The notes beneath the pieces are model-generated. The model was not told the DNA's origin. It worked only from the letters and a program-made list of their open reading frames with translations, and searched no databases. 64,000 nucleotides of DNA from Trichosphaerium sp. ATCC 40318 (lineage: Eukaryota; Protista; Tubulinea): NCBI GenBank assembly GCA_038496445.1, contig JALMLS010000194.1, forward strand, positions 124,001 through 188,000, in the 5' to 3' direction. The translations under genes and the position numbers were made by a program. Numbering within the stretch: the stretch's first letter is position 1; each line of letters begins with the position of its first letter. Positions 17,196 to 20,100 of this stretch are shown here, piece after piece.

Positions 17196-20100
17196 TTAGG
17201 AAGAAAAGTTTGTTTCGACATCAAAAGCGTCGAGCAACTCTTGTACGGAGTTACATTTTTCCCATTTGCTGTATTGTGTAGTGTAGTCTTCCAAGTTCTT
17301 GTACAACTCCTTCTTCAAGGTGGACAATGGGATTGGGTGACCCATCTCGATACCGGTATTAGGGATACCGTCATCCTCAGGTGTCAATGGATTGCCGTCA
17401 TCATCTTCGAGTTCACCATCGTAATCTGGAATACCGACGATGAAACGCAAGTAGTTGATCATTGGGTTGTAACCAGCCTCAGCAGTAATGCGCTCATCCT
17501 CGAATACTGGTTCATCCAAGTTAAATACGTTGGACCAGTGACCACCAGGGTAAAAGTGTGGCTCAGCATTGACGTCAGATTTCTGTACATAAAAAAGTTA
17601 GATTTTATGTTGGAGACACGTGTAGTGTAGGGGTGCCCGCTAACACATACAAAACAAAAAAGGTAGGCGAACGTACGTATGGGGAGGCAGCTTTGTGGAA
17701 CTCTGGGAATTTAGGGTCTACCTCACGCTCTTGAACGGCGTTTTCGTCTTCAACAGGGTCTGGGATCATGCTCTCAGCATCAGACTTGGCAGAGTCCTTG
17801 GCGGCAGCACGCATGTTGACGATTTGACGTTGTGCGGCCTTAAGAGTGCTGATGTATTCAGCGTCTTTGACCTTTGAGCCAGCGAGCTCTTTATCAATGG
17901 CAGCGTTGGCTTTGTCGAGTTGGTCGCCTTCGAGTTCAGGGGAGATGACACCAACATCTTCGCCATCAGGACAGAACGAATTGATACCTTTCTCGTTCAA
18001 TTGCTTCTTGACAGCCTTGGCTTCAGCAACGCGGGTGTTGTCGCCTGCAGCGCTGAAATCGGCAATCTTGGCGTCAATTTGTTCGTTAAAGAATTTCACG
18101 TTCTCAGCCTCAACCTTGTTGGTGAACTCTTGGGTGGCCTTCAAGCGAGTATTTTGGTCGCCCTTGTTGTTGAGGTAAAATTCAAGGAATCGTAGACCTT
18201 GCTCGTATTCGAGTTTCTCGATTTCTTCGAGAGGGTGGCTCAAACATGCTGTCTTCTTTGGGTCGACATCCCAAGCAATTTCGCCTTCCTTGCCCATGAT
18301 CATTTCCTTAATGGCAGGATCCTGAAAAAAAAAAAGTGAGCCACAGAAACATTTCCAAAAGCACAGACGAAAATAAATTCAAAAAAAAAAAAAAAAGAAA
18401 GAGAGTGTACCTTGAGCATCTCAGGTTTGTGGTAAGCTTCGATGGTGGTGATAGCATCATCGTATTGTTGTTTGAGTTGGGCTGGAGTGACTTCGTTCAA
18501 CAATTCCTCTTTGAAGATCTTCCAGTTCTCACCCTTTTGCTTTTCGCCGGAGGATTCAGACTCTTCAGCATTTTCCTCAGCAGGTGTATCGTCTTGCTTC
18601 TTGTTCTTGGCATCCAAAGCGATTTTGTTGGCTTTCTCGATAACCTCTTTGATTGGACCCACCATGTAAAATGCCATTTCTGGGAGTGCGTCGTGTTTAC
18701 CATCCAAAAGCTCTCTGAAACCGGAGATGGTCTCTTTGACAGGTACGAGTTTACCTTCCATACCGGTAAATTGAGAAGCGACTTGGAACGGTTGGGACAA
18801 GAAACGTTGTACTTTACGGGCACGGAATACAATAATACGATCGGCTTCTGACAATTCATCCAAACCTGGAAAAACACAATCGTCAATATTTGTTCAAAAA
18901 AAAAAAAAAACGTTGGATGTTTGGGTAAAAGAAAATCCAAAAATAGCTTTGTGTAACGTACCGAGAATAGCAATAATATCTTGCAATCCTTTGTATGCAT
19001 TCAAAATTTCTACTACAGCACGAGCAGTGTTGTAGTGATCTTCACCGACAATGTCGGCTTCCAACATACGAGATGCGGAATCGAGAGGGTCTACAGCAGG
19101 GTAGATACCCAATTCGGCGACAACACGGGACAATACAGTGGTTGCGTCCAAATGGGAAAAGGTTGTGTGAGGAGCAGGATCGGACAAATCGTCAGCTGGT
19201 ACGTAAATAGCTTGTACAGATGTGATAGAACCTAACCAGTGTCAGTCAGTAAGGCGCGGCATGGAGAGAAAACAGCAATTTTCACAAAATAAAAAAAGCA
19301 ATAGTGCGCGTACCTTTTTGTGTAGTGGTAATACGTTCTTGCAAGAAACCCATCTCAGTGGTCAAGGTAGGTTGGTAACCTACAGCCGAAGGAATACGAC
19401 CCAAAAGGGCAGATACCTCTGAACCGGCTTGTGTAAAACGGAAAATGTTATCAATAAAGAGCAACACATCACGACCTTTGTCACGGAAATATTCAGCCTA
19501 AACAAAACGAATTTAGTCGGAAATTTTTTGTAGGTGGCCAAAATAGAAAGCAGAAAAAAAAAAAGAGCGGGTAAATACGTACAACAGTAAGACCTGTCAA
19601 GGCGACTCTCATACGGGCACCAGGAGGCTCGTTCATTTGACCGTATACGAGGCAAGCTTTAGACTCACCGTCTAGTTTGATTACCTCTGAGTCTTGCATC
19701 TAGATGTTTGCGTTAGTGACGGGCAGAAGACTTGCGGACAAACTAATGAAAAAGAAAAGTGGAACATACCTCGTAGTACAAATCGTTACCCTCACGAGTA
19801 CGCTCACCTACACCGCAAAAGACGGAGTAACCACCGTGCGCACGAGCGACATTGTTAATAAGTTCCATAATAAGCTATGGTAGAGCAATTAGCGAGAGTA
19901 AGCGTAAAAAACGTTGAAAAAAAAAATACAACAAGACGGCTACGAAAAGTTGTAAAAAAAGTTTTTTGCACTACGTACCACAGTTTTACCGACACCGGCA
20001 CCACCGAACAGACCAATTTTACCACCCTTGGCGTATGGGGCGAGTAAATCTACGACTTTAATACCAGTTACCAAGATATCTTCGTCGACCTTCAACTCTC

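Follow-up and report, generated by a model that had tools for sequence, protein, structure and literature searches.

In a 64-kb stretch of DNA (the window, by which we mean the whole stretch analyzed), one gene, transcribed into one spliced mRNA and read in one frame, encodes an ATP synthase F1 beta subunit of ~940 aa in which the canonical sequence is followed by a tail of 410 aa. Few known proteins are as conserved as the F1 beta subunit, and lineage-specific change in the mitochondrial ATP synthase usually takes the form of added separate subunits. The tail described here is verified at the transcript level; with it the catalytic subunit has almost twice its usual mass, and each F1 head would gain ~140 kDa. 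A first-pass annotation of this DNA had proposed a beta subunit of ~930 aa and an undescribed ATP synthase architecture; the former agrees well with the 942 aa now read from a single spliced mRNA, and the latter is plausible. The tail also offers a test case for the grafting of orphan sequence onto an essential, highly expressed enzyme.

Results

Structure of the beta gene

The gene occupies 20923-17196 of the minus strand and consists of ten exons, which when joined give 2829 nt in a single frame of 942 codons and a TAA stop (Table 1). Its nine introns span 70-167 nt and all end in AG at the 3' end. The 5' splice sites of eight of the nine conform to GTAYRY (mostly GTACGY), intron 1 having GTAAGC, and a CTAAC-like box is present 12-19 nt from the 3' end in six of the nine; the acceptor of intron 8 stands just after a run of 11 T. 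Taken together, the intron signals of the beta gene (17583-20814) are fungus-like.

Table 1. Features of the extended F1 beta gene, in window coordinates.
Feature	Position	Strand	Content and support
Exon 1	20923-20815	(-)	Start codon (20923) and most of the expected mitochondrial presequence, by amino acid composition; joint 20815/20647 in X1, X2
Exon 2	20647-20247	(-)	Gene model
Exon 3	20134-19979	(-)	Gene model
Exon 4	19874-19770	(-)	Gene model
Exon 5	19699-19583	(-)	Gene model
Exon 6	19497-19314	(-)	Gene model
Exon 7	19231-18962	(-)	Gene model
Exon 8	18865-18411	(-)	Gene model
Exons 2-8, first part	20647-18612	(-)	Canonical F1 beta to aa 532 (...IALD); Pfam and PDB alignments, six internal joints in RNA contigs
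Exon 8 tail	18611-18411	(-)	67 aa, acidic, arginine-free, pI 4.7; continues the beta frame
Intron 8	18410-18322	(-)	89 nt, GTACAC...CTCAC...T11CAG; spliced out in X1 record 1 and X2 record 5
Exon 9	18321-17677	(-)	645 nt, 215 aa, pI 4.7; predicted mostly helical
Intron 9	17676-17583	(-)	94 nt, GTACGT...CTAAC...CAG; joint 17582/17677 in X1, X2, X4, X15
Exon 10	17582-17196	(-)	387 nt including the TAA stop (17198-17196); last 128 aa, pI 4.1
3' UTR	17195-17004	(-)	~192 nt; AATAAA at 17025-17020; contig end at 17004 (X15 record 3 starts there)

Past the canonical end of beta at aa 532, the frame runs on for 67 further codons without a stop, from 18611 to 18411, where about 66 open codons had been reported in the first-pass annotation. 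The coordinates given there for introns 8 and 9 and exons 9 and 10 proved exact, and both joins are in phase, the two exons being multiples of three. If intron 8 were kept in the mRNA, the frame would stop 37 codons on (ORF 18300-18863). Chance is excluded as an explanation for the open frame, because none of 20,000 shuffles of exons 9 and 10 retained 343 stop-free codons. Scored with codon preferences learned from the beta part, the proposed frame had positive values (linker +0.17, exon 9 +0.05, exon 10 +0.28), while the five alternative frames of each piece gave -0.07 to -0.53, with stops in 13 of the 15 across the three pieces. Codon preferences match only the proposed frame in all three tail pieces, in line with the earlier statement that the tail exons share the codon bias of the catalytic part.

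Judged from its sequence, the beta part is complete and ordinary, and apparently catalytically competent. The first 54 residues contain no D or E and 12 K or R, a composition that suggests the N-terminal mitochondrial presequence expected of this subunit. The beta-barrel domain PF02874 was matched on exon 2 (E 2.5e-16; 60.4 bits, cut-off 20.9), the nucleotide-binding domain PF00006 on exons 3 and 7, and the C-terminal domain, PF22919, was matched as well; a Walker A motif (GGAGVGKT) and a DELSEED-type loop (DELSEADR) can be read in the translation. Searching the PDB with the C-terminal exon returned 58 solved beta chains with E values down to 1e-32, aligned to the last residues. Most of these chains stop within a few residues of aa 532, and that of Polytomella continues well beyond.

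Transcripts across the beta-tail border

The stretch is contained in 24 public RNA runs, and four of these (X1, X2, X4, and X15, representing four studies and four coded organism labels) were aligned to 16700-21100. The RNA data are contigs assembled from short reads, not the reads themselves, and as such carry no isoform ratios and have lost rare variants; no single contig spans the whole mRNA, and contigs of this kind are no proof of individual molecules reaching from ATG to stop. All nine splice joints are present in these contigs, the seven upstream joints in one to four runs each. The two joints that connect the tail, proposed in the first pass as the places to check in cDNA, are both there, 18411/18321 in two runs and 17677/17582 in all four. 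The former occurs in X1 record 1 (contig positions 1093/1094) and X2 record 5 (1083/1084) with nothing between the two flanks. It was read from the contig piece table; the joint table lacks it, the T-run at 18369-18410 having been handled there as a repeat.

Depth in the bin containing intron 8 is 0.39 of that in the adjacent bins (X1, X2, and X15), which equals the exonic share of the bin, and thus a contig retaining intron 8 is absent from these runs. Within 18322-18410 no contig starts or ends in any of the four runs, and no poly(A) signal was found inside intron 8. The only 3' end seen, at ~17004, is 16 nt past the AATAAA signal and beyond the stop codon of the tail, and depth is 0 at 16700-16993 in all four runs. 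A separate downstream gene, whether with its own promoter, in an operon, or joined by trans-splicing, was considered and rejected: the contigs cis-splice 18411 to 18321, and none gives exons 9-10 a 5' end of their own. Nor was there any sign of the arrangement that the first-pass annotation had weighed against its own reading, a beta cDNA that stops before ~18300 and leaves exons 9 and 10 to a transcript of their own; such an independent transcript is refuted by the contigs joining 18411 to 18321 and by the sole 3' end at ~17004.

The runs differ from one another at 18528, 18531, 18570, and 19002, all of them synonymous third positions. Three of these four fall in the linker, with 18528, 18531, and 18570 clustered in 43 nt of this acidic segment, and contigs break there in two runs. 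Among the listed contig pieces exon 9 is without variation, and exons 9-10 together (1032 nt) show at most one. In X2, extra contigs at 19346-20668 match at 95-99% identity on the catalytic exons only, with depth up to 300 versus 85, and have loose ends at 19547 (intron 5) and 20029 (exon 3) that continue into unlike sequence. These extra contigs may come from a further beta-like gene or a diverged haplotype, or else from some related organism present in the sample.

Properties of the tail and searches for relatives

The complete tail (67 + 215 + 128 aa) has a mass of 46 kDa and a pI of 4.5; its acidic residues number 87 and its basic ones 47. From aa 533 to 642 it contains no arginine and its windows are net acidic; a basic stretch lacking acidic residues occurs only once, at aa 755-774 within the module. 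Exon 10 includes aromatic-rich stretches, ~15 residues long and devoid of acidic ones, that do not resemble typical disordered sequence. AlphaFold models made from single sequences gave exon 9 a mean pLDDT of 58, with values of 70-90 over ~80 residues, and six helices, of which five are long (31-51, 56-92, 95-111, 132-148, and 154-182); exon 9 is predicted to be mostly helical. Exon 10 reached a mean pLDDT of 39, and no fold was obtained. The large helical and acidic domain of the first-pass annotation is therefore retained as to its acidity, and as to helices only as a prediction for exon 9. Internal repeats, likeness to the beta core, and a paralog in the 64-kb window were looked for and none were found.

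None of the three tail pieces produced a Pfam or NCBIfam match at or near the curated cut-offs, and phmmer searches with the tail pieces against all PDB chains gave no credible match. Going by entry codes, solved ATP synthases from Polytomella, Euglena, Trypanosoma, Toxoplasma, and Tetrahymena are among the chains searched. The best PDB candidates, a pentatricopeptide-repeat chain for exon 10 (E 0.034 over 32 residues) and HMG-D for the 67-aa stretch (E 0.64), were taken as chance. A HMMER search with exon 9 of 1.84 billion protein representatives returned four weak matches, all judged spurious, three being tandem-repeat proteins and the fourth a protein of 6400 aa with 15 matched stretches; no standalone homolog of the module was found among these representatives.

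Other collections were similarly blank. A word-indexed protein collection gave no matches to exon 9, exon 10, or the linker within 0.55-1.75x the query length, a result that says little because this length filter hides full-length fusions and because the query's own copies are absent too; the host lineage may simply be missing from the collections searched. Two scans of JGI metagenome contigs found none, and an exact look-up of the 232-aa ORF found no record. In the ESM Atlas the best scores were 0.62 (exon 10) and 0.60 (exon 9), with no relatives, and the recognition values of 1713 and 1506 are below the value reached by 91 of 100 known-family proteins. Foldseek comparison of the exon 9 model with the PDB gave only generic helical bundles (best E 0.68). 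No large beta extension was found in the literature searched, so that prior description of the same extension, which the first-pass annotation had named as a possible objection, was not encountered in either the libraries or the literature covered.

Discussion

Comparison with other ATP synthases

A comparison of this tail with those of characterized beta subunits shows both a common principle and marked disparities. In the chlorophycean algae Polytomella and Chlamydomonas the beta frame, as here, leads directly past its canonical end into the tail. That of Polytomella, ~60 aa long, wraps the adjacent alpha subunit and is thought to stabilize the enzyme (10.1101/543108). In contrast to these ~60 aa, the tail here measures 410 aa and extends over two further exons, and the phmmer alignment to the Polytomella chain (6rd4_X) ends 11 residues into the tail (query residue 95), with no similarity beyond. 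Amoebozoan beta tails measure 58 aa in Dictyostelium and 118 aa in Acanthamoeba, the latter "by far" the longest among amoebozoans; in Acanthamoeba two helices run round the neighboring alpha, with one of the copies also in contact with the peripheral stalk (PMC13632647). The chlorophycean extension of 60-70 aa, which the first-pass annotation had taken for comparison, is surpassed by that of Acanthamoeba. The amoebozoan tail is lineage-specific, as is the tail here, and the first 67 aa of the latter could wrap alpha in a like manner. The tail here has 3.5x the length of the Acanthamoeba tail, the longest one so far characterized. Overall, the known tails are of 58-118 aa with two helices, whereas the present one has 410 aa on three exons, with six predicted helices in exon 9 alone.

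The amoebozoan tail has been likened by its describers to the separate p18 subunit of trypanosomes, and euglenozoan p18, a helical protein present in three copies on the outer alpha face, may be seen as a functional analog of such peripheral F1 decoration (PMC13632647). Unlike the tail here, p18 is a separate gene product that is not fused to beta, and it has no significant sequence match to the tail. A eukaryote-wide survey of ATP synthase subunits records a b-h fusion in SAR, and a term search of it located no passage on a beta fusion (PMC10214729). Short beta tails arose independently in chlorophycean algae and amoebozoans, in both cases bracing alpha. The far larger tail described here would add a third such change to these two, exceptional in its size and orphan in its sequence.

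Fate and role of the tail

The reading we prefer, to which we assign about an even chance, is that this is a nuclear gene for a mitochondrial F1 beta subunit whose tail is kept on the protein, forming a peripheral, stator-bracing decoration in three copies. The module would stay attached after import, giving three 46-kDa appendages per F1 head. By analogy with Polytomella and Acanthamoeba, the first 60-70 residues of the tail probably climb the outer face of the neighboring alpha, and the remaining ~340 residues, comprising the helical exon 9 and the exon 10 parts, would then be located at the F1 periphery. From there they would support the alpha3beta3 head, perhaps with one copy in contact with the peripheral stalk. 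Such a role would be that of a structural or regulatory stator decoration, not a new catalytic activity. The placement of the extra domains on the membrane-facing side of F1, suggested in the first-pass annotation, is doubtful, because the two solved tails both run up the outer face of the neighboring alpha (10.1101/543108, PMC13632647). Points against the preferred reading are that the tail shares no similarity with the Polytomella tail or with the solved ATP synthase subunits searched, that the AlphaFold models of exons 9 and 10 are poor, and that the basic stretch at aa 755-774 may be a place of internal processing.

Within this reading, a more specific proposal is possible but rather doubtful: that the module is a folded lineage-specific domain kept on beta and forms a new peripheral F1 structure, either a threefold collar or a platform on which a matrix enzyme could dock. 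A threefold collar might connect the head with the peripheral stalk or with neighboring complexes; as to docking, malate dehydrogenase is docked on the ATP synthase in Acanthamoeba. If a folded domain does stay on beta, lineage-specific mass would be carried by the core catalytic subunit and not by an accreted subunit.

The main rival, which we consider unlikely, is that the gene encodes a polyprotein, imported on the beta presequence and cut in or after the linker to yield a near-canonical beta and an acidic matrix protein of ~40-46 kDa. The released protein may or may not belong to the ATP synthase, and the fusion would provide for co-import and 1:1 co-expression; if the protein is cleaved, it would be a new example of a mitochondrial polyprotein. 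That the module has no presequence of its own, with methionines near the start of exon 9, fits a once-separate gene captured by splicing. There is also a precedent in Toxoplasma, where ATPTG1 and cytochrome c1, an ATP synthase component and another mitochondrial protein, come from one gene and one frame and post-translational cleavage has been suggested, providing a model for such processing (PMC13623125). The Toxoplasma partners, however, are known proteins of two complexes, whereas the partner here is an orphan, and its border with beta shows no evident cleavage site. The border segment, aa 533-642, is unlike matrix processing peptidase sites because it is arginine-free and net acidic. The basic, acid-free stretch at aa 755-774 could be an internal processing site, but this only presequence-like stretch is found in the middle of the module and not at the border. 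The absence of a standalone homolog from the 1.84 billion representatives likewise argues against a polyprotein.

It is improbable, in our estimation, that the tail is a young and largely unstructured addition, derived from recent read-through and exon capture, which is tolerated with the beta C-terminus pointing outward and has no specific role. Its orphan status in every library searched, the low AlphaFold confidence, chiefly for exon 10, and the low ESM Atlas recognition values are all consistent with such an origin. Less easily accommodated are the 343 stop-free codons with host-like codon preferences, the confident helices over ~80 residues of exon 9 (pLDDT 70-84), and the aromatic-rich stretches of exon 10; in addition, a 46-kDa load carried three times over on a highly abundant mitochondrial protein would be costly if useless. 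Finally, it is very improbable that the fused form is a minor isoform or an assembly artifact, with normal beta supplied via retained intron 8, early polyadenylation, or a second gene: the insensitivity of contigs to rare variants and isoform ratios and the hint of another beta-like sequence from the X2 extra contigs on the catalytic exons speak for it, but the assembler path runs through 18411/18321 in two studies, intron 8 sequence is absent in the three runs with enough depth, and that intron has no poly(A) signal, leaving ~17004 as the sole 3' end.

Neighboring sequence in the window

Only 83 nt separate the ATG of the beta gene (20923, minus strand) from that of an ankyrin-repeat gene running divergently on the plus strand (21007). 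An X15 contig carries a template-switch adapter directly before 20992; this contig belongs to the plus-strand neighbor and is uninformative on the beta 5' end. The adapter position puts the 5' end of the neighbor 15 nt before its ATG, so that the promoter common to both genes is very short and bidirectional. On the other side, the next ORF past the beta poly(A) site, 16435-16926 on the minus strand, includes a signal-peptide-like stretch (MYKLAVLLITLSVAYA) and gives no sign of transcription in any of the four runs. In the window as a whole G+C is ~40%, introns are short, and long ORFs are few. For an FCP1-type BRCT piece, the nearest ESM Atlas neighbors are fungal, rotifer, and chordate clusters; with the features just named, this is a tentative hint of a non-animal opisthokont. 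A tRNA gene at 62765-62838 on the plus strand is the only Rfam match in the window.
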